Notes under the pieces: generated by a model | Told to the model about the DNA's origin: nothing | The model's input: only the letters and a program-made list of their open reading frames with translations | Database searches by the model: none | DNA from: Gekko japonicus | Lineage: Eukaryota | Assembly (NCBI RefSeq): GCF_001447785.1 | Contig: NW_015166441.1 | Location: 569,007 to 633,006 of the forward strand | Length of the DNA: 64,000 nucleotides | Reading direction: 5' to 3' | Shown: positions 15,326 to 62,333 of the stretch, one piece after another | Position numbering within the stretch: the stretch's first letter is position 1 | Layout of the letters: each line of letters begins with the position of its first letter | Position numbers and translations under genes: made by a program

Positions 15326-16574
15326 CTGTATTATTAAGAATAAAAGATGTGTCATACCTGGTTCATTTCATATAACAGATTAATATTAATAACACTAAGT
15401 ACTAAGGAAAGCTTATAAAGTGAATACACACATGAAAAGTAAACAGTCGTTTATGTGCCAATACAATCCTTTCAATTTTCCCCTTTCCTTATTCATATTC
15501 AACCATTGTCTGTCCTCTTCTACCCAACAATAGATAAAAGAATAGGATTGGAAAATTTGCTATCTACTGTCAACCCTTTAATGAAAGACTCCCCAAATTC
15601 TCATTGTGGTCCCCCCCCCCCGAAAACCTAGTAACAGACACAACCTTTTAAGTGCGATAACATTATAGTCCTAATAGTTCAAAGTGAGATGGTACACAAA
15701 ATTAATTCCAAATTCTTCTGCTTTCATGCAGGTTGTTCAATCTATTAATTCAAAACCACCTCCATAAAAACAAGTAACATGACATGAATACAATCTTATA
15801 TATTTGAACACATAAATATAGTCTTATATATTTGAACGCGATTAAGCAAATATTGACATGGCTGTACCAGGACATAACTTCTATCAATTCATCACTAACA
15901 GTCTCAATGATATCTTCATAAGAGCTGACTGTAAATAACTCACATGAGATCGATCTATACTTTTTATATCTAGCTGAGCAGGTGAGATCAAAAGCCCGGG
16001 TAACTAATCATCCCACAACTCAAGAGGACTAGCTCAACTGCATTTACAGTGGACCAGCTCCAGAGCTTATTGATGGTACAGATTTGCTAAGACAGTATAG
16101 TGGTATGTCAGATTTCCTTTTCTTAGCATCTTTAAAGAGTAGGTTCATGTATGTGGCCAGCTGGGATCTAAAGAGCCCCATTCATTTCTCCACAGGCAAG
16201 GAGGCTTTAATGATGTTTAATTCTGACTCCAATTACTCATTGCTGAACTGGAAACCTCTTACACGATTCCCCTAGCCTCCAGAAGTGGTTATTCTGGATA
16301 CTGAAACTCCTGTGGTGAGACCTTGAAGACCTGCCATATGCCTGAATGCTCACATGCAGCCCATTAGATTCAAGTTATTATACTGCACAAGCCAAAGGCA
16401 ACATCATTATATGGCCAATTTCCCCCCCATAGCCATCTCTTATTATCCTTAGAAGGTATAATTTTTATCTCCGTCTTCCTTGTTAAAAAGGAAATCTGGC
16501 AAAATTCATCCGAAAGCTCCCCATGGTTGTAGTCAACTGAGCTGGAGTGCAATTTGGACCCAATCCACTCATAC

Positions 16575-16658
16575 CTTGTTCAGCATTGGTATAGAAATAC
16601 TTATAACTTGGGTTTCCTCTCTCATTTATGATTTCTGGATGGATATTTCCACTGGGAT
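16575..16658 (-). CDS. TXNDC12: TXNDC12 exon 6
   Basis: (D)[27 protein letters not shown]; AG/GT boundaries; 84 bp. Confidence 0.95.
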
Positions 16659-16750
16659 CTGTGAAATGGAGAGAACAATTAAATATCCCTGCATTGGTAA
16701 CAGTGGAAACCCAAGAGCAAAAAGCAATGATTCTGATATGCCACCCTTAC

Positions 16751-16820
16751 CCATGAAAAGGATTCTGGGAATGTAGCCACCATCAGGACTAAAAGCTTCA
16801 TCCTTTGGTTCTTCTTCATC
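16751..16820 (-). CDS. TXNDC12: TXNDC12 exon 5
   Basis: [23 protein letters not shown]; AG/GT boundaries; 70 bp. Confidence 0.95.
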
Positions 16821-17056
16821 CTGCAAATAAATGGTGACAATAAAGGAATACTGCCACTGCTTACATATCCCTCTTAAAAGTTTACTTCAATCAAACCATC
16901 TGTCTTTTTTCAAAAAGTTGCTTAGTTTTAGGAAGCATAAATGCCTTGAAAAGAAAACAAATTACTCCAATTGGTTATACTTGTCCACAGCGTTCTTTAG
17001 CAAAAACAGCAAGACACAGCTCCAACAACAGTTCAAAAATAATATACAAAATCAAT

Positions 17057-17330
17057 GAAGAAGAGAAGAAGAGATTGGATTTATACCCGCCCTTCACTCA
17101 GAGTCTCAGAGTGGCTTACAAACTCCTTTCCTTTCCCTTCCCCACAACAGACACCCTGTGAGGTAGGTGAGGCTGAGACAGCTCTGACAGAAACTGCTGT
17201 TTTTCGAGAACAGCTGTGACAGAACTATGGCTTGCCCAAGGTAATCCAGCAGCTGCAAGTGGAGGAGTGGGGAATCAAACCCGGTTCTCCCAGATTACAG
17301 TCTGCACACTTAACCACACCAAACTGACTC
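17057..17330 (-). mobile_element. Squam3-like tRNA-derived SINE
   Basis: ggatttatacccgccc...ccacaacagacaccctgtgaggtagg...ggggaatcaaacccggttctccc; same family as 33237-33470 and 62334-62620. Confidence 0.75.
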
Positions 17331-17479
17331 GCAGGAGCTCTTTCTTTAGAAATATGAACAGTATCTTTTATTAACATTCTGCATCTATGTGAATGTCAGA
17401 AACTATATTCAAAGGAAAAAACATGGAAAACCATTCCATTCTAGTGTTATAAAAAAGACATAACTTAAATTGACTTTAC

Positions 17480-17553
17480 CTCAAGGTTGACCATCACAAA
17501 GTTATGGGCAAGCTCTGATATTTCCTTAGATTCAGCAAACTTTGGTTTTAAAG
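17480..17553 (-). CDS. TXNDC12: TXNDC12 exon 4
   Basis: (A)[24 protein letters not shown]; AG/GT boundaries; 74 bp. Confidence 0.95.
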
Positions 17554-18185
17554 CTAAGAAAATTAGAGAAAGGAAATTAAATTAAGCAAAAGTGAAAACA
17601 ATGACCAATAAATTACACAATTTCTAAACACTTCATCTTTAACACAACTGCTCTGATCTGTGTTCCAGTCCTATTGAAATCAACTGAGCATAAATTATTC
17701 ATGACTGACTTGTCTCATTGTTACCATAGGACATAAGCATGTCTAACTGTCACTAATTTTTGAACAAAATTCAATTATTGATTAGTCACCTCTAACTGAA
17801 TTGATCTGTGTGCCAGTTCTACTCGGAAGATCAGTTCTCACTCAATGTTCCTTCTTCACAGTCAGTGAACATTTCAGCTGCCTTTAGCATGGCATTGTTT
17901 CTTTGTAACGGGTTGAAAGAATCTGAATCTGTGACAAGATCACTTTTCTGGAAGGCCAAGGCTGATTAATTTCAGAGGGCATCCCGGTAAACTAAGCGGC
18001 AAGCTTAGATTTTGGATATAAATCTGAGATCTGACTTTTGTGTTAGTTGGTGTTGAACTGTTGTTGTTTAACTGTGAGCTGCTTTGAGCTTTTAGGAAAA
18101 GCAGTTTTCTAAATAATTATTTCAAAAGTAATATAAGCATAGCCCTGTTATACTTCAGGATGTGTGTGTATATATATCTATATAG

Positions 18186-19048
18186 CAGGGGTGGCCAAAC
18201 TGCGGGACAGGAGCCACATGCAGCTCTTTCACACATATTGTGTGGCTCCTGGGAGGGCAGCTGGGGAAGTGATGGGGAGGCATGCCTCCACGATCCCCTT
18301 CCCCGGCCAGTGTTCCCATCCCTGGGTTGGCTTGAGGTGGTAGTAGGGAGCAGAGAAAGAAAGCAACTTTAACTTCAAATATGTTTTCAAAGCCCCCCCC
18401 CCCCACCAGATTGAAGGCATTTGTCTCTTTAAATCTTAAGCTGGCACGGAGGGGGGCTTGGAGGACACACTTAAAGTTGCTTTCCTTCCACCTCTCTCAT
18501 CCTCTCTCCCTCCCCATCTATTTGCTTTTCCTTCTTTCTTTCCTTTTTCCCTTCCTTCCTCCCACTCCCATCTATTTGCTTCTTTGTTTCTGTTTCTCTC
18601 TTCCCTCTCTTTCTACCTCTTTCATTCTTTCCACTTTTCTCTCTCTTCCTTCCTCCCCTCCCTCCCCATCTATTTGCTTTCTCTCTTCCCTCTTCCTTCC
18701 TCTCCTCCCTCCTCATCTATTTGCTTTCTTTCCACACTTCTCTCTCTCTCTTTGCCCCTTTCTTTTTTCCTTTCTCTCCCTTTCTTTCCACCTCTTTCAT
18801 TTTCTTTCCACCTCTCTCTCTCTCTTAGACAAATAAATATTATTAGTAAAAAATTAAATATCATGGGGCAAATAAATATCATTATCTGTTTTTACCCCTT
18901 TTGCTTTTATTTTGGCAGTCTCATGTAATGTTAATAAAAAGCAAATTTGCATATTTTTTCAATAAAAATGTGTAATATTTGTTCATGTCTTGTGGCTCTC
19001 AAACATCTGACATTTATTTCTTAGGTTAAACGAGTTTGGCCACCCATG
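18186..19048 (+). mobile_element. Non-autonomous hAT transposon with an internal CT-rich low-complexity tract
   Basis: TIRs caggggtggccaaac / gtttggccacccatg; TSD ctatatag / atatatag; CT-rich repeats with unit catctatttgct at 18480-18830. Confidence 0.8.
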
Positions 19049-19523
19049 ATATATAGCCACAGTGTTCATACATTAGAAAAGGCAGCTATTTCAGCCTTTT
19101 CAGCACACACTGAAAGAAGCACAACTCCAAAACTGTTTAACAAAGTGTAACTTGAACATAATAGGACAATGCTCTCTGCAACATGCCTTCAAACGTCCAG
19201 GGGGATAAGTGCTGACCAATGTTTCTAGTGAAAAATGTCTATGTTGAATGAAAAAAAAAACTTACATTTGAATCCAGTACATAGAATTAAGAGACAGTTC
19301 TCAGTTTCACCACCATATTGGGATGAGGAGAGACTTTACCAAGTTAAACTACCTAGTTACACACCAAATGTTAACACTATAAAAAGAGCATACCCTGAAC
19401 CTTTTTTAAAAAAAAGACAATATTAACTAAAATTCCTGTTAAGACTTTTCCACTTAGGATAATAGCCTATGAATTCAAAGCATAAAAAGGTCATGGCTGT
19501 CATAGAAAGTTAGTCTACCCTAC

Positions 19524-19576
19524 CTTTACAAGCACCACACCAAGACTTATGAATGATTATCATTATAGGCAGTCCA
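19524..19576 (-). CDS. TXNDC12: TXNDC12 exon 3 (active site)
   Basis: (S)[17 protein letters not shown] with the CGAC thioredoxin motif; 53 bp; AG/GT boundaries. Confidence 0.97.
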
Positions 19577-19999
19577 CTGAAAGAGACCAAGAAAACACAC
19601 ACACAGTTAATGTATTTCAGTTTCCTTGATATGCAATTTCTAAATATGGTTTCTATAAGGAAAATCTTGTTGACACTTTATTTCAAGATCAAGACATCTT
19701 GACCTAGTAACAGACTTGCATTGTACTATGCATGTTTACTGGGAATTATGTCTTACAGATGGCAATAGGATTTTTTCCAGCCTAATTTATTTGCTTTAGG
19801 CCACCAGTAAGTACCCAGTTAAACTGAAATGTTATCCCTTATCAACAGCCTACTTGCCACAATGGGAACTGTGCAGTAGGAGCCCTGTCTATGTCTCCCT
19901 CCATGGACAAAAGTATCTCATTTACTAGCAGCTATACAATGAAATGTATCTTCCTACATCAGTCCAGCTCATAATTACTTTGCCTTACTGTGTTGAAGA

Positions 20000-20208
20000 T
20001 AGATTCCGTGGGTGGGTGGGTGGTGTTGGCGTCAGTCTGAAGCAGCAGAACGTTTGAGTCCAGTGGCACCTTTAAGACCATCAAAGTTTTATTCTGGGTA
20101 TAAGCTTTCGTGTGCATGCACATTTCTTCAGATGTGCATGCACACGAAAGCTTATACCCTGAATAAAACTTTATTGGTCTTAAAGGTGCCACTGGACTCA
20201 AACTTTGT
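20000..20208. mobile_element. Short Penelope-like insertion with two inverted pseudo-LTR ends
   Basis: Near-perfect ~155-bp palindrome 20052-20203; TSD tgtgttgaaga at 19989-19999 and 20209-20219; minus strand CTGAAGA-AATGTGCATGCACAC-GAAAGCTTA hammerhead core. Confidence 0.85.
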
Positions 20209-20344
20209 TGTGTTGAAGACCGTTCTACATGCTGGAATAAGCGGATGTCAACTGATTTCACTAGTACCTAGTTCACATGCAGCCATTTTCTATTAATTCT
20301 CCAGAACACGTCATTCTCTGCCATCCATAAATCATATGTTTTGA

Positions 20345-20572
20345 GCCAGGGTGGTGTAGTGCTCCGAGTGTCATCCTAGGATATGGGAGACCCACATATG
20401 AATCCCTACTCTGTCATGGAAGCTTGCTGGGGGACCTCGGGCCAGTCATACACTCTCGATCTAACCTACCTCACAGGGTTGTTGTGAGGATAAAATGGAG
20501 AATGATATAGGATAGCTGACTTGGGTCCCCAATGGGGAAAAGGGTGGGGTATAAATGAAGTAAAATAAATAA
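20345..20572 (+). mobile_element. tRNA-derived SINE (Squam3/MIR-like)
   Basis: ggtggtgtagtg A-box head, ctaacctacctcacagggttgttgtgagga core, ggggtataaatgaagtaaaataaat tail; relatives at 25530-25810, 35875-36100 and 59030-59470. Confidence 0.65.
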
Positions 20573-22209
20573 CACTGCTTTTCTTTTTCTATCTAGTATG
20601 AAGATGGGAAAGCTAATTAGATTCTAAAGTATGAAACTGCATGGCTGTTTTTGTTGAACATATAGCCATACTAAATACAAGCTATTTCCAACTCTTTACT
20701 TTCTGCCACTGGTAAAAAAAACCCACATTCCAATGCAAGTTCTCAGAAAATTACAAAACTTTTGGAGCATCATAAGGTGCTCTGCAGCACAATCCCACAT
20801 AGTTATTCCAGTTTAAACCTAAAGAAATATATGAGCTTAAAAAGGGGTAACTCTGTAAAGAATATGTATTGTTATTAAACAATCCCAGAGGAAACCATAC
20901 ATACAACTTTCCATACAACTTTCCCTTTCCATGAGGTACGAGGAACAAGTATCGAGGTAACCAGTAGTTGTTAAGAAGGAATCTTTCAATAAGTACTCCA
21001 AAAATAATCAGGTTTAATGAGCAAGAGCTACCATGGATATTAGACCTGTGTCAGTAGCACCTAGGTCCCAAATACCTAAAAACAGTTTTCTATGAATCAA
21101 CCTATAAATGTGCAAGTAACTAGTAAGGTCATGCCTATGATTTACAAGTATAATGCAAGAGCCATCCTTAGTCACAAAGTTTGGCAGATGTGGGCAGACA
21201 AAAATCTAGGTGGTTCTAAGGGGCTAGTCAAAAATGTTAAGACTAAGATAAGCATTCCAAACTTTATGATCAAACACGCTATTTACTAGAAAGGAAAATG
21301 AGTTTTTCTCTATATGTGCCTTCAAGAAAATGAGGAATTCATCTTAAATATGCATTAAAGTTAAAATTATAAACCTTTTGCATATAATTTTAAGGGGGAT
21401 TGACATATTCAGGGTTGTCGTCCTCTTGAGTAAGTGCATAAAGAAAGCCATACCCTTCATTCTTCCCATCTCTTATTCCCCCCATGTTCCTTGTTTACAG
21501 ACTATTCCATTTTATCATATCGTTAAGCCTTACCTACAACTGAGAGATGCTCTTACTGCATGTAATTGTTTTGCCTTTTACTGCACTGAAGTGGGAATGG
21601 ATTGCATCCTATGTTTTCCCATAAAAGCTCACAGAACATAATAAAAAAATGATTATAAGAAAAACCATAACTAGCATAGGAATTATAATAGCTACATACA
21701 ACTCAGCTTCTATGTCTGAGGCTGCTCACTGATAATATTAGTGCCCAAGAAGTGTACCTTAGAAACAAAAACAGAAGACTGAAAACAGTTTTATTCAATG
21801 AGCCAAAGCCACAATAATGAATAAAGGAAAAATGTAAACTTCATATAGAATGCAAATATCTATTTACATTTTGGGATCCATTTTTTGTGGGGGGAAACAA
21901 ATTCAGTACCATGTGATTCCATTCTAAATTTCCTTGCTCTAACTTATGTGGCCATTAGAAAAGGTATTTTAAATGTTCAGGAATATGTTAACAGCTGTGC
22001 TCTGGGCGCTCAACAGCATGTTGACGTAGTTGCTTCCTAAAGCAATACTACTCCATAGTTTGCTCTCTGCTTAATACCTTGTCTCAGTGAAGAAGGTGGG
22101 CTATAAATAAAGTAAACAAAATAAAATACAGAGAAGTATGCTTCTTTCTAGTATATATTTCAAACTACTGAGCTCAGAACAGTGATTTACCAGACTCTAT
22201 TAATAGGTC

Positions 22210-22639
22210 TGTCATGACCTCCAGGGGGTCACCACCTTCAGCTGCCACCACTCTGGACTTCAGGTTCCTTGAGAAGGCCCAGTGTACCCTCCCAAGCCCA
22301 TCCAAAATGCCCCCTTTTAAGCCGAGAACTATAGGCGTGATGACCAGGCAGAGAGCATTAAACAAATGGTTTATTAACACAGTAATGGGGCACTGAAAAC
22401 AAGACAAGGTGCTTAAATATATACAACAGTGTTTAAAGGCAAAAATAACCAAATCTAACACAACTACCTAGTTCACTTAACTGGTTACTACTTCAAGGCC
22501 CACAGCCCTCTTATACCAGCCTGTGCCTGTACTTACTCTGTCCCAAGTGAGGGATCTTTCTCCTCAGACCAGACTATTCCCCTCAGTTTAACTCTGTGAG
22601 AGGGAAGACCGCAGAAGAGCAAAAGAACACAGTTTCACA
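22210..22639 (-). mobile_element. Possible solo LTR
   Basis: Begins tgtcatg and may end tttcaca; minus-strand AATAAA ~22370 and TATA-like ~22511; TSD imperfect (ggtc/gttc). Confidence 0.35.
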
Positions 22640-22719
22640 GTTCAGAAAGCTTAAGTTCCATTCCCTCATACACTCTCTGTACACTGATTGGCTAACCATT
22701 GTGGTGGTCTGAACGAAGC

Positions 22720-22912
22720 AGAAGGGATCGTGCTCCATCTGCCTTCCATCTGCCTTTATATATGAACTATCTACAATTTCAGTGTATCTGAGTAAGTGTG
22801 TATGCACATGAAAGCTCATACCACAAATAAACCTTTGTTGGTCTTAAAGATACCACTGGACTCCAAATCTGTTCTTCTGCTTCAGACCAACATGGTTTCC
22901 CGCCTGGATCTA
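22720..22912 (+). mobile_element. Penelope-like pseudo-LTR with mutated hammerhead motif
   Basis: gtatctgagtaagtgtgtatgcacatgaaagctcatacc...ttggtcttaaagataccactggactc...cagaccaacatgg; same family as 20000 and 39040. Confidence 0.75.
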
Positions 22913-23282
22913 CTTTCTCCTACATTACACTTGTCATCGAATCCCATTGATATGTGCTAAAAGCACAGTTTTAATTGTGTGTTACCAATACTGAAGTGCA
23001 TTCAACTCAGTGACACACACAAATATTATAACTGACATTACAACAGCAGCATGTCCCTCATACAAATGAAGTTCAGCTCCAAGTACAAAATAACTACATA
23101 CTTCTCAGTTTACCAGACCAAAATCTCATACATCTGAAGATCAGCAGGCCAGATCCAGCCAGAATAGATGCCAAACTAAAAACTGAAACTACCAAATACT
23201 CTAATCAAAAACTGAAAGGCAGTATGTGGGTGTAACTCAATCATGTGCATAGGACTGGAGCCCCCTTAATTTTAGTAGCAGA

Positions 23283-23930
23283 CAAAATAGGGATCCCTAG
23301 CGTGTAATGGTAGAAAACAGCAGAAAAACACCAAGGGAAGACCATCAAAGATTATATATACTTGAAATGTCTGAGTATGATATATTGAATAAGTATTTAA
23401 ATTACAAATAAATGCCTATAATGAGTGGTCCACCACCCAAAACAAATACAGTGTTCCCAATTATAATCATGTGTGCTCATGGCATATCATACATCAACAC
23501 TGAGATACAAATAAACAAATTTGTGTGTTGACAGCACATATACTAAAATTGGAATGATACAGAGAAGATTAGCATGGCCCCTGAGCAGGAATNNNNNNNN
23601 NNCAGGAATGACATGCAAATTCTTGAAGCATTCCATATTTTTTATTGCATTTAAGCAAGGAGAATCGACCAGTTGGATTTATGTGCATACCTTGTTATCA
23701 GCACCTGTGAGCGCAATTACTGTTATGTTTTTTTGTATCTCAGTGTTGATGTATGATATGCCATGAGCACATATGATTATATTTGGGAACATTGTATTTG
23801 TTTTGGGTCGTGGGCCACCAACTCATTCTAGGTGTTTATTTGTAATTTAAATACTTATTCCATATATCATATGCTCAGAAATTTCAAGTGTATTTGATGG
23901 TCTTCCCTTGGTGTTTTTCTGTTTTCTACT
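23283..23930 (+). mobile_element. Inverted-repeat retroinsertion with Penelope-like architecture carrying U6
   Basis: Arms 23310-23517 and 23726-23929 are reverse complements; extra 27-nt tail on the left; TSD cttaattttagtagcaga (23265-23282) / cttaattttagtcgctga (23931-23948). Confidence 0.8.
23528..23643 (+). pseudogene. RNU6: U6 snRNA retropseudogene
   Basis: cagcacatatactaaaattggaatgatacagagaagattagcatggcccctg...atgacatgcaaattcttgaagcattccatattttt matches U6 including the ACAGAGA box; CpG-type substitutions, diverged 5' end, no upstream PSE/TATA seen; 10-N gap inside. Confidence 0.92.
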
Positions 23931-24495
23931 CTTAATTTTAGTCGCTGATTATTTTTAAGTTATACAGAATGATTCAGGTATATTAATTACAGCAGTTATG
24001 TATCTAAACAGAACTATCCTTTTAAAAGCAAGGCACTCATGCACAAAATTATAATGCTATACATTAACTGCAAAAGCAAAATAAAAGTTCAGTCTTCTTG
24101 TACGATTTCAGTACAAGCTTTTTACACACGCAATTTCATAAATGTTGTAAATATAAAAACTACTTGTGCAAATCCTTTTAAAAGCAAGGCACCCATGCAC
24201 AAAAGTATAAAGCAAAATTACAATATTTTTAAAGACTCCTTTAGGTCTTTAGATTGCTTAGAATTGCAGCGATATTCTTGTGAAAAGTATGTAGCCTGAT
24301 TCTGTGCAGAGTAAAGTCCAATGATTTTAAAGGATTTATGGCTTCAAATGCCTTTGAATTTACTAAGACTAACTCCAGAGTAAAAAAAATATATTTAGGA
24401 CTGGATTTTATCTCTCATAACTGCCCTCACAGATGTTGAATGGAAGGGGGAAGGAGGACTCACAACTAGAAATACTCTGGTATGCCAAAGTCTAT

Positions 24496-25022
24496 CAAAT
24501 AACAAAACAATGCAGCACACAATACAAAATGGCAAGTAACAGCAAAACAACTGTGTGCTGAAATACCCGCAAGAGTAAATATACAAAAAGAGACTTCAGC
24601 AAAGTGAAACACATATGTAATCAGCAATAAATGTGTACATAAAATCCATTATAGGAAATATAGAAGTCTACAGAATGCATCAAGTCCAAAGTAGATATCC
24701 AACACTTTTCCTAGGTAGTATACAGTGTTTCAGACTTCTGGTCCGTCCTCAGGAACAAAGAGCCACCATAGAAAGTCTCATTCCAATTTCTTTACAAGAC
24801 AATATTGTTCAGTTTCTTTATGGGCCAGGTCTCCTAAGCTTGAAAGTGCACCTCTCAAGGTTGCTACTATGTAGAACAGGACCAAAAATGGAGGCGTCTA
24901 TATTTCCTATGATGGATTTTATGTACAGATTTATTGCTGATTACATATGTGTTCCACTTTGCTGAAGTCTCTTTTTGTTTATTTACTCTTGCGGGTATTT
25001 CAGCACACAGTTGTTACTTGCC
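24496..25022. mobile_element. Penelope-like insertion (distinct family) with inverted arms
   Basis: Arms ~24529-24669 and ~24892-25024; perfect 14-bp TSD atgccaaagtctat at 24482-24495 and 25023-25036; left tail; hammerhead motif inside. Confidence 0.75.
24696..24757 (-). ncRNA. Type I hammerhead ribozyme motif, slightly decayed
   Basis: Minus strand TGTTC-CTGAGGA-C-GGAC cagaa GTCT-GAAACACT-loop-AGTGTT-GGATA; stems I, II and III all pair. Confidence 0.65.
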
Positions 25023-25222
25023 ATGCCAAAGTCTATGACATACTTAATTAAACCACCAGTTTGACTGAATATCAGCGCAGGAGGTTGGTTAGCAGTAAGG
25101 CCAGCCTTCTGAGTTTTATCCTGCATTAATGCTATTAATGCAAAAACAGTCTCACCACAAAAAAATGGAATTTTCTTAAGAGCAAGCCTACTTACAGTTG
25201 CAACCATTATTGTAAAACATAC

Positions 25223-25283
25223 CTGGCTGCTGCCTCCTTTTTCCCATCTTCTAATGTCCGCCAGTTAATGTGATCACCAAAAC
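25223..25283 (-). CDS. TXNDC12: TXNDC12 exon 2
   Basis: (G)FGDHINWRTLEDGKKEAAA(S); AG/GT boundaries; 61 bp. Confidence 0.95.
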
Positions 25284-26497
25284 CTTGGAAGAAAATATGT
25301 GGTACATAATTTACCATACATTATTCACAGGAAATACTAATAATTACTCATATTAAGGCACACCAGCTATAATGGAATAAATTATTTAAAAGAGTAATCA
25401 TCTGAATTAGCATGATATAACACTTAGGCTGGCATTCTCAGGTTCTATTCCAACACTCTAAGGAGAGTTATGTCCTTCTAAGCCCATTGACTTTAGTGGA
25501 CTTGGAGGAATATAACTCAAAGCAGCACTGTGGGAGACCTAGGTTCAGATTCCCACTCTTGTCATGAAACTCACTAAGAGAGCAATGCTATGCCAGTCTG
25601 CTCAGTAGTATGCTCCATTTTATTCAGTAAAGCTTACTCATAAGAAAGCATCCTTAGGATTGCAGCCTAAGTTACTTTGGGCCAGTCACTCTCTCTCAGC
25701 CTAATTCACCAAATAGGATTGTTGTGAGAGTAAAAGAGAGAAGAGGGGGAGTCTGATACATGCTGCCCTGAGTTCCTTGGAAGAAGGGTGGGATAAAAAC
25801 ATACTAAATAAAACATTTTGTTTTGCAAATGCTTTTAATGTTTATTTCTTGCTCAAAAGTTTGTTGTTGTTATTAACTTAGTACTACTGCATTTTAAAGT
25901 GTTAGCAGTTTTATTATATATCATCTTATACCCACATGTACAAGAGAACACTAACTACAGTCAAGTTAACATTTTGTAACCAAACAATATCGATCAAATG
26001 ATAAAATCCTGTTACAAAGCATGTAAAAGAAATAGAAATAACTTCATACCCATGTATCAATATTTATTTCTCACTTCCACTTTTCAGGTCGCTGTTGAAT
26101 AATTGCAGGTTGAGAAACAGAACAGCATTTCTCTAATAAACATAATCCTGGCTATTTACTTGAGCTTAGACATTACTTGAGAACTTGAGTACAGTGGCTA
26201 TATAAACATTTCATAAATAAGGAAAACTGTGGCACACTGATCTCCATTATAAGGAGTTAACCTGTTCTGAAATAAGGAACACCTTCAAGGAATAAAAATC
26301 CTGTCTTTCAGGAGCCTGTGACAGTCAGAATAACATATGCAACCAAACCCTATGCATGTTTATGTACTGGGGTGCAGCAGTGTGTAACAAAAAATATGTG
26401 AGAACAAAATACCAAAGCTGAAACAACTGAAAACGTGCCACCGTCAGGTCAAGCTAAGATTTAATAAGGAAATCAGGAGATTTTGAAACTATTTTAT

Positions 26498-29140: not shown

Positions 29141-29200
29141 NNNNNNNNNNNNNNNNNNNNNNNNNNNNNNNNNNNNNNNNNNNNNNNNNNNNNNNNNNNN
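29141..29200. other. Assembly gap (60 N) in the GC-rich start of BTF3L4 intron 1
   Basis: Run of N. Confidence 1.
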
Positions 29201-38356: not shown

Positions 38357-39035
38357 GTAGGTACCTTTGTTTGAGAACACGGACCACTGCAGATCTTGAA
38401 ACACATAATTTCTGTTGTTTATTTAATAAATTCATTTCTTGGTTTAATAGACACATTTGGCTTTGTAAATTTACTTCTGTCACATACCTAGAGTTTCAAA
38501 TAATATAGAGCAGCTAAAACTAAAGTCAAGACTTATGTCAATATTACCCTAACTTGGCAAGAACTCTCTGGGTGCCTTGTTTTGTGTTTTCATTTGTTAT
38601 GTCATTGATGTAAGCACCATCATCCTAATCCAAATTCACAACCACAGCCTTATTTGTTAAATGTTTATTTCATATGGTCCTCTTGCTGTTTCCCCACTTA
38701 AAGTAGCCCAGGTGGCATCAAACAGAGTCCCTGACTCCTCCGTTCTAGTGGAATAGTCTGCTTGAGGAGATGTGTGGTTGCTGTCTTTAGGACTTTTCAG
38801 AGATGCTGTGAAGTTACTTTATTTGCCAAGGCTTTTATAATTGTACAGACTTTGGTGACTTGCCAAAGCCTGCTCAGCAAACTGGACTTATTTATTGATT
38901 ATTTTATTATTCCGACTTTAAACTTAAGTCCTCTGTATCTGTTTTACATTAGGGATTTGCATTTGGAAATAAAACAAAATCCAGTCTGAAATTCCTCAAT
39001 TATTTAAGATAACTAAAATGCCTTGATTATTTAAT

Positions 39036-39985
39036 TCCAGGTGGTCAGCTGTGTTGGTCTGAAGCAGTAGTGCAAAATTAGACTCCAGTGGCACCTTTAA
39101 GACCAACAAAGGTTTATTCAAGGTATGAGCTTTTGTGTGCAGGGCACACTTTTTCAAATACATTGGAATGGTGTGTAAGGTTCACACTTATAGACAGGGA
39201 AATTAAAATGTCCAAATAGCAGATAAATGTCCAAAGGTGTCTTTTCTAATCGTGGGAAGCAAACCAAGAATATCCATTCTGTCCTCCCAGGTGTGAAGAT
39301 GACTTAACAGCACTTTTTGAGGTGGATGCAGGGTCTTTTCTGAAAAAGAAAAACACTAAATAAATCAGTAGCTGTTTTATTACAAAGGAACTTTTAAGAA
39401 CAGAACGGAAAGGGAAATTGCTGAATTATAAGTTATTACAACAATTGGAACAAAAACCTCCCCAGGACTCAACAGGGATATTGGTTTCTTATCTCATTAC
39501 ACATACCAACTCATTCAGTCCTCATATATGTATTCTCAACAAGGACTATAAATCCTCTGTATTTTAGTGTTTTTCCTTTTTTGAATAGTATATTAGAATA
39601 CCGAATGTAATGACAGGAATATTGGGATGTTTTGCTGACATGACCCTGCATCCACCTCAAAAAGTACTAATGTCATCTTCATGCCTGGGAGGACAGAATG
39701 GAGATTCTCGGTTTGCTTCCTACAATTAGAAGAGACACCTTTGGACATTTATCTGCTAGTTGGACATATTTATTGCTTTATAGCTGTTGACCTTATAACT
39801 TTAGATTGTTATTTTGGACTTTGCATATTTTAAACATCATCATGTTACATGTTAATTTCCCTGTCTATAAGTTTGAACCTTACACACCATTCCACTGTAT
39901 TTGAAAAAGCGTGCCTTGAACATGAAAGCTCATACCTTGAATAATCCTTTGTTGGTCTTAAAGGTGCCACTGGACTCTAATTTTG
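39036..39985 (+). mobile_element. Truncated Penelope-like element with inverted pseudo-LTR and endonuclease C-terminal remnant
   Basis: Arms ~39073-39335 and ~39642-39985; middle translates VAVLLQRNFKNRTEREIAEL*VITTIGTKTSPGLNRDIGFLSHYT (PLE GIY-YIG C-terminus); TSD ttgattatttaat; left tail; decayed hammerhead motifs. Confidence 0.85.
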
Positions 39986-40475
39986 ATTATTTAATGTAAC
40001 TTAACTGGTCACTAAAACTAATGACATTTGTTAACCTCCCTGAATTTTTGACACCTCACTGTCTACTTTTCAGTTTCACAAGCCAAGTATAGGAAGCAGG
40101 AGAAGCAACAAGGGGAGAAGGTGACTCTATATAATCTAGATGACACAGTTACCTTCCAACCAGAACAGTTAGCAGATGTTCCCACCATTCGTACTGGTTT
40201 GGGGGATGTGGGCTTTCTTGATTCTGTATAAGCTGTGGACTAGTTGCTTGCTCCATTGTAGTACAGTGCTGCCTACTCAGAGGCAAGTGTTTTGCTTGTA
40301 CTCTTTGAAGGCCTTCCTCCTGTATGTTAGCGATCAGCAAGGATCAGATTTGAGATCACTATTTCAGCTTTGTAGTTTCCTAATACAAATCTCACCACAC
40401 CCATCCCCTGCTGCTGTTAACCCAATAAGGTAAAAAGGCTGCAACCACAAATAATAGAAGTGAGATGGGGAGCTG

Positions 40476-42565: not shown

Positions 42566-43121
42566 TATTCTCCCCTTTTGACATTCTGATGGGCTAATGC
42601 CAAGCATGAATATCATATCCAGTTAGACCAAATTATGCACTTCTATTTACCAGCCAGGCATCACCCAAAGATCAGTGGGAACCTTAGCCCGTTCCCAGTG
42701 CTGATCAACAAGGATTGTTTAGGCTATCCATGCCGGTGTGAGATGGAAGCTGTAACTGCTGCTAAACAGATCGAAGTGCCTGGGAATGGGGCACTATGTT
42801 GACCACTTAGTGGTTATAGCTGCTACCTTATGCCTGTGCAGGTTTAGACTACCCATCAGAGTGATAAAAACCTGCAGGAAGAAATGCCTCCTGTGTAAGG
42901 GGACTGAATTAACATTAGGTGCCTTTGTATGAGCGGAAGTAGGGAAGTTGGTGGTTTTCCCATGCAAGTTGCATCTTCTGATACTACATCTACAGTGTCC
43001 TTGAGTAGCAGCTTTCCAGAAGACTGTAGAAGACAGGAAAAGTCTGTTCATGAGTGAAGCTCTGCTTACATCCAACCCAGTGCTTCCTAGTGCTTTGCCA
43101 CTTTTGTGTAACAATCTGCCT

Positions 43122-43687
43122 CTTTGAGTCCAGGGGCACGCTTAAGACGAACAAAGTTTTATTCTGGGTATAATCTTTTATGTGCATGTATACTTCTTCA
43201 GATACATTGAAGCATGTGTGCACATGAAAGCTTAAAGGTAAAGGTTCCCTTGCTCGAAAGCCAGTCGAATCCGACTCTAGGGTTGCGGTGCTCATCTCTG
43301 TTTCAAAGCCGAAGAGCCAGCGCTGTCCGAAGACGTTTCCGTGGTCATGTGGCCGGCATGACTAAACACCAAGGCGCACGGAACGCTGTTACCTTCCCAC
43401 TGAAGTGGTACCTATTTATCTACTTGCAATTTCTTGCTTTCGAACTGCTAGGTTGGCAGGAGCTAGAACTAGAGATGGGAGCTCACTCCATCATGCGGAA
43501 CCCGGGTCTCGAACTGCTGAACTACTGACCTTCCACAGCCTGCAGTTCAGCGTCTTAACCACTTGAGCCACCGCAGCTCCAACATGAAAGCTTACACCCA
43601 GAATTAAACTTTGTTGGTCTTAAAGGTGCCCCTGGACTCTAACTTTGGTCTGCTGCTTCAAACCAACATGGCTGACCACCCAAATCT
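43122..43687. mobile_element. Penelope-like inverted pair interrupted by a Sauria SINE
   Basis: gagtccaggggcacgcttaagac...cttcttcagataca and gaaagctta...ttggtcttaaaggtgcccctggactc...accaacatggctgacc. Confidence 0.75.
43235..43581 (-). mobile_element. Sauria SINE, full length
   Basis: (ACCTTT)n tail, tRNA-like head ggagctgcggtggctcaagtggttaag; 13-bp TSD acatgaaagctta; near-identical to 56962-57311. Confidence 0.9.
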
Positions 43688-43820
43688 ATCTGCTTTTTTG
43701 CAAGTTTGCCCTTATGTGTTGTACTATAAACCATAATCTTTTCTTCTGGGTGGTCTCTTCTTTTGTAATGAAATAATTCTGTTAATTCCACATATCGATT
43801 AAAATAATTTTATTTTACAG

Positions 43821-59268: not shown

Positions 59269-59659
59269 GAGTGTAGGATCTGAGAGATTCATGGTCAGAT
59301 GATCCACCTTCTGTCATGGAAGCTTGCTGGGTGACCTTGAGTCAGTCACACACTTTCAGCCTAACCTACCTCAAAGGGTTGTCAGGATAAAATGCAGGAG
59401 AGGAGAATGATGTAAGCTACTTTGCGTTTCCATTGGGGAGAAAGGCAGAGTGTAAATGAACTAAGCAAATAGGAATTAATTCTGGAGGAGTGCGAGGTGT
59501 AATAATTTAATTGCCACTGGAGTTCTGTTTTGGTTTCCAGCAGCATCCTTGCTTCCTGGAAGCTTGGTAGCTCTTCCCAAACAGCTGAGCTAGCGTTGTT
59601 TGAGTCCACCCTTATATGGAAAGCGTACTTGTTTATACCCCTGTATTTATAATTCTGGC

Positions 59660-59726
59660 GTGATGAGGTCCATGGGGTCGCGAAGAGTCGAACTCTCGAC
59701 TATGCGACTGAACAACAACAACAACA
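59660..59726 (+). mobile_element. BovB 3' terminal fragment
   Basis: gtccatggggtcgcgaagagtcg...cgactgaacaacaacaacaac. Confidence 0.75.
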
Positions 59727-60560: not shown

Positions 60561-61991
60561 AAAAAGGTAGGCTGCTTTATGGCTCTGCTTGTTTTGTTTG
60601 CTTTCTCTAGGGCTGCTGGCTCTGATGGAGCTCACTATAGGAGCTCCCCCCCCCCTCGGCTGCCATCTCATAATTTATGGCTCCTCGCCCTGTTCTTTGC
60701 CTCTGATCGTTGGAGCCGTAGAGAAGACGTGGCAAAAGCCCAACTTGAACCCCCCCCCCCCCGCGCCCGTAACAAGGCCCCATGGAGAGTTTATGCTACT
60801 TCTTCGGTATTTCTTGTGTATTTGTCGTTATATTTTCGCATCCATGCATCTCTTTCTTCCTTACTAGTTTATAAGGCAGACCACATTTGTTTACAACTCA
60901 GGGTTCTAGTTATGGTCTGACCGAATTCCTGTTGGCTGCTAAGATGTCTTATCGGTGCCTCTACAGTACTTTGTGTTGATTTGTCTTCTTTTGTGCTAGT
61001 AGTCTGTTGTATAGTAAAATAACCTGAAGGTAACAGTTGCTATGAGGTAAGGTTCCAGTTAATAATATGTGTGGTCATGCTTATTTAGACAATGTGCAAC
61101 TTGGTGATGAGTAACTCTTCAGGTTTTCCAGAGGTCTTTTATTCACATAAATGTGGGTAAGTAGGTCCAGATGATGGATTGCAGTGGAGCAACTTAAAAA
61201 ACAACACCTTAATAATATGAATTCCAGATGGAAATTAGTTTGATAGGTTAGGAGATCTAGATATTTAGTATCTATGTAAACACATTGTATGTACTGAACT
61301 GGAGGATCACATGTTGTTTAGCTGAAGAATACTTAATTAAATATTTAAATGATGTTACAAATTTGCATTCTTGAATGTACTCTTGAATGTTTTGGCAGTC
61401 ATAGTATAGATTTCCACATCTGAACCTGCTCCTATGAATTTGTGTGGGACAGATGTAAAATATCCCACAGCCTAGTAGAGTGAGGAGAACATGGAGGTTA
61501 TAGCAGAGGTTATGACAGCAGTTTGCTCACTCATATAATACAGTTAGATAGAATGATAGCTTCTTGATAACTTAAAATAACTAAGCCTGTATGGAACTGA
61601 TTTATTTGGAAATTGACAGTTTACTGAGATTTAACATTGCATAGGATAGCTTGAAAGAAAACAGCTTTGCTGATTAGGAGCACTAAATTGCCCAGATACA
61701 CTAATAAAACAATATTTATTCTCTGAAGTAGATTTAATATCTCAAATCTTTTAAATATAGTGGTAATGACTGGAAATTAATAGTGCAATTTTATGTAGGG
61801 TTACTCTAGTCTGGAGTATTATTGCATGGAATGGCACTGGAAATCTGGCGGAATGATTTCAAATGCCATCTGGTAAATGCTACCACAGTTAAGGGGGATC
61901 TGCAATGTCATAGGGTCTTCTTAAAAGTTATACATGCTGTGTTAGTAATGAACTGTATGGGATCCAAATTGGAATGGTTCCCATGTGACTT

Positions 61992-62333
61992 TGTTGTTGT
62001 TGTTCAGTCACACAGTCCAGTCCGACTCTTTGCAACCCCATGGACCACATCACGCCAAGCCCTCCTGTCTTCCGTCGTGCTCCGGAGTTTGCTTAATTTC
62101 ATGTTCGTTGCCTCGATAACACTGTCTAACCATCTCATCCTTTGCCGTCCCCTTCTTCTTTGACCTTCAGTCTTTACCAGCATCAGGGTCTTCTCCAGTG
62201 AGTGCTCCCTTCTCATTTGGTGGCCAAAGTATTTGAGCTTCAGCTTCAGTATCTGGCCTTCCAGGGAACAGTCAGGGTTGATTTCTTTTAGGATTGACTG
62301 ATTTGATCTCCTTGCAGTCCAGGGTACTCTCAA
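61992..62333 (-). mobile_element. RTE-BovB 3' end
   Basis: RVPWTARRSNQSILKEINP...LKYFGH...RGRQRMRWLD; (CAA)n tail. Confidence 0.92.

Follow-up and report, generated by a model that had tools for sequence, protein, structure and literature searches.

How did a copy of U6 snRNA come to lie between two head-to-head copies of one and the same sequence, within a single target-site duplication, in the genome of Gekko japonicus? The window, by which we mean the whole 64-kb stretch of DNA analysed (41.8% G+C, CpG ratio 0.28), contains the structure at 23265-23948, in the neighbourhood of a recognizable gene. Exons of TXNDC12 are found on the minus strand near 25284, 19542, 17548, 16784 and 16608 (16486-25320), so that the insertion is intronic and its U6 is antisense to the gene. 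The exon peptides are nearest to the TXNDC12 of lizards, Podarcis included, and agree with it at as many as 108 of 112 residues. The TXNDC12 active site, WCGAC, is at about 19542, and at two residues (HINW, GLPIM) the protein encoded here is unlike every squamate TXNDC12 protein compared.

The first-pass annotation had divided the insertion into a duplication, a tail, an inverted arm, a U6 copy, a unique stretch and a direct arm. When 23100-24100 was read again every part was found at the position first given to it. The parts, from left to right, are these:

23265-23282: left copy of the target-site duplication, 18 nt, 72% A+T, identical to 23931-23948 at 16 of 18 positions
23283-23309, minus strand: tail, 27 nt past the element's 3' end, present on the inverted (left) copy only, as defined by alignment of the two copies
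23310-23517, minus strand: inverted arm, 208 nt, a 5'-truncated copy of the element's 3' region
23518-23522: filler AATTT, 5 nt between the inverted copy and the 5' end of U6
23523-23643, plus strand: U6 snRNA retrocopy (Rfam RF00026, 65.4 bits against a gathering score of 44, model positions 1-105)
23644-23725, plus strand: unique stretch, 82 nt, in the direct copy only, which extends further 5' than the inverted copy
23726-23929, plus strand: direct arm, the element's 3' region, stopping 27 nt before the end of the inverted copy
23931-23948: right copy of the target-site duplication, pairing with 23265-23282

The two arms are outward-pointing copies of one RNA 3' end, and one of them runs 27 nt further 3' than the other. 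By blastn they are 87% identical, with gaps, and in a MAFFT alignment there are 16 substitutions in 198 aligned bases (8%) together with 13 gap columns. A single AT-rich duplication of 18 nt encloses the entire U6-containing structure, and a match of 16/18 was reached in none of 2000 shuffles of the 91-nt flanks. ATT or TTA stands at both edges of the target, where the exact nick sites cannot be fixed; if the true duplication were only its 12 perfect bases, the tail would grow to as much as 33 nt. There are two perfect palindromes, one of 12 nt (TAGGGATCCCTA) inside the 27-nt tail, and one of 10 nt (ACAAATTTGT, 23515-23524) that spans the joint of the inverted arm, the filler and the first bases of U6. 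Base pairing between the tail and the stretch upstream of the shorter end exceeds that obtained with shuffled tails (p=0.008). In the direct arm, an ATG at 23896 opens a frame that stays open past the shorter end and across the tail, for about 11 and about 20 codons respectively, and a 20-codon open frame is not significant by itself. That the structure is without poly(A), as had been claimed, is borne out: there is no A-run anywhere in it, neither at 23929/23930 nor after U6. A sensitive blastn search found no other copy of the arms in the 64-kb window, and a 28-mer common to both arms had no match in a metagenome scan.

What sort of retroelement leaves such a structure behind? The published descriptions of Penelope-like elements (PLEs) come to mind. 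PLE insertions are 5'-truncated, often with an adjoining inverted copy that is itself 5'-truncated, and with a tail of 30-40 bp at one end (Craig et al., PMC8557442). For a rotifer PLE the tail is 31 bp, the pLTR takes in 12 codons from the start of the ORF (22 when the tail is counted), and palindromes are found at the inverted junction (Arkhipova et al., PMC3846280). [quoted passage not shown] In the U6 insertion we find one duplication (18 nt, 16/18) around the whole unit, an inverted 5'-truncated copy adjoining a direct copy, and a one-sided tail which at 27 nt (up to 33) is slightly below the published 30-40 and compares with 35-36 nt in other insertions of the window. A PLE-type insertion would also be expected to cut its AT-rich target at ATT.

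This layout in fact recurs in the window, in at least two other insertions (39024-39995 and 24482-25037) and, more loosely, in a third (43118-43685). Along with two simpler PLE copies, these are:

20000-20230: tight inverted PLE pair
22786-22930: solo PLE 3' end with tail
24482-25037: PLE-type insertion with a 14-nt duplication (ATGCCAAAGTCTAT), a 35-nt left tail and 127-nt arms at 94% identity
39024-39995: PLE-type insertion with a 13-nt duplication, a 36-nt left tail, inverted arms and a longer direct copy
43118-43685: PLE-type insertion with the tail on the right copy and a duplication, judged by eye, of about 14 loosely matching nt

Four regions, 20000-20230, 22786-22930, 39024-39998 and 43100-43700, align together as one family with at least four copies in the window. 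The family carries a hammerhead core, CTGAAGA...GAAA, with an ATG in stem II; the core begins about 80-85 nt before the shorter 3' end, and the 3' ends fall about 70-75 or about 105-112 nt past the stem-II ATG, the longer of them in an AC-rich stretch. Because these values match the PAc figures within about 10 nt, the family is taken to be PAc/Poseidon-like. Its two alternative 3' ends, about 35 nt apart, are natural examples of the reverse transcription start sites seen in vitro. The 24482-25037 insertion, only 550 bp from the U6 insertion, has a hammerhead-like core on the minus strand near 24700-24750 that Rfam does not detect, and an 11-bp stem that links its tail to the stretch before the shorter end (shuffle test p=0.006). 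The shuffle test was not significant for two of the four comparators, the 39-kb and 43-kb copies, the former having a 9-bp tail stem in its MFE fold all the same. Nested in the 43118-43685 copy, and splitting its hammerhead region, is a tRNA-derived SINE on the minus strand (43237-43578), which we take to be of the lizard type.

The 39-kb copy had been put forward in the first-pass annotation (at 39036-39985) as a clear Penelope copy, and it does have the same layout as the U6 insertion. Pfam returned no GIY-YIG match for its supposed remnant of 62 aa, however, nor did Rfam report a hammerhead in it. What marks it as a putative PLE is a decayed hammerhead core, along with homology to the better-preserved copies. 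Rfam searches of the four PLE regions, at E values up to 10, found no hammerhead even where a core is plain by eye. The inverted PLE pair at 20053-20202 gives strong sub-threshold Rfam matches to many unrelated miRNA precursor families (best E=7e-13), and where PLEs abound in a genome, tight inverted pairs of this sort probably give rise to false miRNA calls. Elsewhere in the window another inverted match pair, of 69 nt and 87% identity, is found at 59656-59724 and 61991-62057, its members 2.3 kb apart.

Is the arm of the U6 insertion itself recognizable as PLE sequence? It had been described as having neither an ORF nor a hammerhead, and we found neither: there is no usable or testable ORF in the arm, and in the arm and the 286 nt of direct copy there is no Rfam hammerhead match up to E=10 and no core by eye. 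Since Rfam misses the hammerheads of true PLE copies in this window, its silence on the arm means little. A strict scan for hammerhead cores was also empty and deserves little weight, for it missed the real cores of the window's PLE family as well, its stem rule rejecting even cores that read CTGANGA...GAAA by eye. Local alignment of the arm with the four PLE copies in the window revealed no similarity in the sense orientation. One antisense match, at about 55% identity (z=4.7 against simple shuffles), was taken as chance. Canonical PLEs have a hammerhead in the pLTR. Some PLE clades are without canonical hammerheads (PMC8557442). With no matches, no hammerhead and no usable ORF in the arm, what is supported is a PLE-type mode of insertion only, and not PLE sequence identity; the PLE origin that we attribute to the arm is a putative one that rests on layout. 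The original proposal, a U6-PLE chimera inserted by PLE machinery, is partly supported: it holds as regards the layout and its recurrence in the window, and has to be read more cautiously as regards the putative PLE origin of the arm.

Might the partner of U6, then, be something other than a PLE? The insertion could be a U6 chimera with a LINE (L1, L2, RTE or CR1) or with its SINE, the inverted copy having arisen through twin priming or a later rearrangement, or it could be a MITE that was hit by a U6 retrocopy. The arm, as just described, is without proven PLE homology, and the U6 chimeras documented in a lizard are exclusively with L1, L2, RTE and AnolisSINE2 (Doucet 2015, PMC4476161). Nevertheless we find these possibilities unlikely. 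What twin priming inverts is another part of the RNA, further upstream; it does not duplicate the same 3' end of 200 nt, but here the inverted and direct parts are the same 200 nt. The L1 3' end with poly(A) that is expected of a U6/L1 chimera is absent, as is a simple-repeat end. The L2-type chimeras have simple-repeat ends and duplications of 1-9 bp (PMC4476161), as against 18 here. A MITE or other DNA transposon would need symmetrical ends abutting a short duplication, whereas in this insertion 27 extra nt are found at one end only, next to a duplication of 18 nt. The twin-primed L1 and the MITE had both been named at the outset as the competitors to be checked, and neither is compatible with the layout.

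The MITE alternative also calls for U6 to have arrived separately, which brings us to the U6 copy itself. It is the sole Rfam match in the 64 kb. It is nearly complete, with 4 nt deleted from the 5' stem and all of its CpG sites changed, and it ends in T6 (23638-23643). The claim that U6 is located at the 5' end of the direct copy can be made more precise: it lies exactly at the 5' end of this longer copy, whose orientation it shares, and it was found to have neither a duplication nor an A-tail nor a promoter of its own. A search for a separate target-site duplication around U6, which the first-pass annotation had suggested, gave no sign of U6 having landed in a pre-existing element. A later U6 insertion was rejected on the same evidence, and it would moreover have required an exact landing at the inner end of the inverted arm. 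What is found instead is the arrangement of the known U6 chimeras, in which the 3' U-tract of a full-length U6 leads into a retroelement that is 5'-truncated and runs in the same direction, all within one duplication. The joint at 23643/23644 comes directly after six T, as in the U6/LINE chimeras.

One would of course like to know that the U6 copy is a real continuous sequence, as a 10-N assembly gap (23593-23602) lies within it. Could two loci have been joined at a U6 pseudogene, or could a fold-back read have produced the inverted arms? Assemblers are known to have trouble with the inverted structures of PLEs (PMC8557442), and the same 7 nt, CAGGAAT, are present on each side of the N run. 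The sequences on either side of the gap, on the other hand, both belong to U6, share one orientation and follow on from each other in register. The letters add up to 70 + 41 - 7 = 104 nt, and vertebrate U6 has 107 nt; 104 nt is what a 107-nt U6 amounts to with a 4-nt deletion and one extra T, so that U6 is exactly accounted for and none of its sequence is missing. The N gap looks like the place where two contig ends overlap by 7 nt. The copies of the duplication match each other from one side of the gap to the other, as do the arms, and this speaks for a single locus. Arms that are only 87% identical are not a fold-back copy, since a fold-back read artefact would give identical arms. From the matching flanks and arms, and from the U6 register, we infer that the sequence is continuous across the gap, and an assembly artefact strikes us as very improbable indeed. 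A second assembly gap in the window, of 60 N, is at 29141-29200.

Do the parts of the insertion appear to be of the same age? The 8% divergence of the arms corresponds to about 4% per copy, and the copies of the duplication differ at 2 of 18 positions. In its 3' 88 nt the U6 copy has seven differences from vertebrate U6, of which five are at CpG sites (three of these being transitions) and two are not. To judge from these sequence comparisons, the ages of arms, duplication and U6 are compatible with a single event, without proving one.

We lean, with a confidence only a little above even, toward one old PLE-type retro-insertion in a TXNDC12 intron, in which the longer of two cDNAs ran through 286 nt of element RNA into a full U6. 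Such an insertion would begin with nicking of both target strands, 18 bp apart. Reverse transcription would then be primed by each 3'-OH, at one or the other of two closely spaced positions on the RNA, as happens with PAc in vitro. One cDNA would end after 208+27 nt, while the other would copy 286 nt of the element and then the whole of U6, to its first base. The cDNA ends might finally be joined over the short AT palindrome. The U6 insertion probably arose just once, as a side product of reverse transcription such as is known for LINEs.

At what stage, in the PLE-type retro-insertion that we favor, would U6 have been joined to the element? The precise copying of U6 from 5' to 3', together with the truncation of its partner, points to a joint made at the RNA level. 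U6 may have been joined to a 5'-truncated element RNA through a template switch by the reverse transcriptase, or through prior ligation of the RNAs, and the sequence fits both. Template switching is how the U6 joints are explained by Doucet (PMC4476161), who found such chimeras to be common in a lizard genome; prior ligation by RtcB has been proposed elsewhere (PMC6789731).

A special case of our favored explanation, and the mechanism preferred in the first-pass annotation, is that RtcB ligated the 2',3'-cyclic phosphate of U6 to the 5'-OH of a hammerhead-cleaved PLE or retrozyme RNA, which was then inserted by the PLE enzyme. This is chemically sound, in that RtcB joins U6 with its cyclic phosphate to RNAs with a 5'-OH (PMC6789731) and, in vitro, efficiently ligates hammerhead-cleaved animal retrozyme RNAs (PMC7229834). 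There is also no shortage of hammerhead-bearing PLEs in the window. One would then expect a hammerhead, or a recognizable part of one, beside the joint, but none is seen there or within the 286 nt. In the window family the core lies about 80-85 nt before the shorter end, and the joint in the U6 insertion is 286 nt upstream, so that the positions do not match, unless the family of the U6 insertion is different. For PAc, hammerhead cleavage is dispensable for insertion in vitro and no RNA-seq reads begin at the cut (PMC11167929), from which it appears that a cleaved RNA is not the usual template. Hence the ribozyme route seems to us quite improbable, though if it were true the U6 insertion would be the first natural record of a ribozyme-processed retroelement feeding the capture of a host RNA.

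Two further scenarios would place the joining of U6 and its partner ahead of the insertion. One is that the insertion belongs to a non-autonomous family headed by U6, SINE-like, and having a 3' end recognized by the PLE machinery. The U6 promoter lies upstream of the gene and hence outside the RNA, so that a retrocopy would not carry it along, which speaks against a U6-headed family. So does the failure to find a second copy in the 64 kb, where the hammerhead-bearing PLE family has at least four. Non-autonomous derivatives of PLEs do exist (PMC8557442; bioRxiv 10.64898/2026.07.22.740005), and the arm, having no coding sequence and no hammerhead, would suit one. Yet all the U6 chimeras so far described are single events (PMC4476161). 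We consider a family improbable; the U6 insertion is most likely a single event.

The other scenario, which we rate as equally doubtful, is a read-through or otherwise longer transcript, running from a U6 gene or pseudogene into a nearby PLE 3' fragment, in which case the 82 nt would be wholly or partly flanking sequence of the source, brought along by 5' transduction. The RNA would have its 5' end at U6 position 1, as seen, and PLEs can mobilize foreign sequence upstream of the terminal repeat (PMC3846280). The 82-nt unique stretch at 23644-23725 matches nothing else in the 64-kb window. Against such a transcript stands the T6 run at the end of U6, which should terminate Pol III.

What would a U6 chimera in a PLE-type insertion mean? 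Chimeras of snRNAs have been used as footprints of how the LINE reverse transcriptases handle their templates, and they have been taken as a general property of the non-LTR elements. If the reading that we favor is true, snRNA chimeras would extend to a third, telomerase-related class of retroelements. The integration cycle of the PLE class is still poorly understood, and a chimera would provide a natural marker of template use by PLEs. By surveying the U6 pseudogenes of genomes rich in PLEs, one could learn how many such events there are and where their joints fall. The first-pass annotation knew of no description of U6-PLE chimeras, and a search of one literature library by title and abstract likewise found no paper on one. 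The U6 insertion is a single decayed locus, with a partner sequence of putative PLE origin, and as such it is a lead and not a result.

How does the insertion compare with the systems it resembles? With the U6/LINE chimeras, that is, U6/L1 in mammals and those of Anolis (PMC4476161, PMC6789731), it shares a promoterless full-length U6, a joint at the U-tract and one duplication. It differs from them in that the partner has no poly(A) or simple repeat, and has an inverted second copy and a one-sided tail of 27 nt, features that mark PLE rather than LINE integration. With the PLE insertions (PMC8557442, PMC3846280, PMC11167929) it has in common a duplication, variable in length, of an AT-rich target, head-to-head inverted copies, a one-sided tail and a short palindrome at the inverted junction, and its possible ORF start, about 11 or about 20 codons from the two ends, is near the 12 and 22 codons of the rotifer PLE (PMC3846280). 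It is unlike them in that it has neither a hammerhead nor any remnant of RT or GIY-YIG, in that it is not similar to the PLEs of the window, and in that a host snRNA lies at the inner end of the direct copy. A further parallel is found in Adineta vaga, where unrelated sequences have been captured between PLE terminal repeats within one duplication (PMC3846280). In both cases unrelated host sequence is held in a PLE-type frame of repeats, inside one duplication; in Adineta vaga, however, the captured sequences are genes with introns between two direct pLTRs, whereas here the partner of the truncated copy is a small Pol III RNA.
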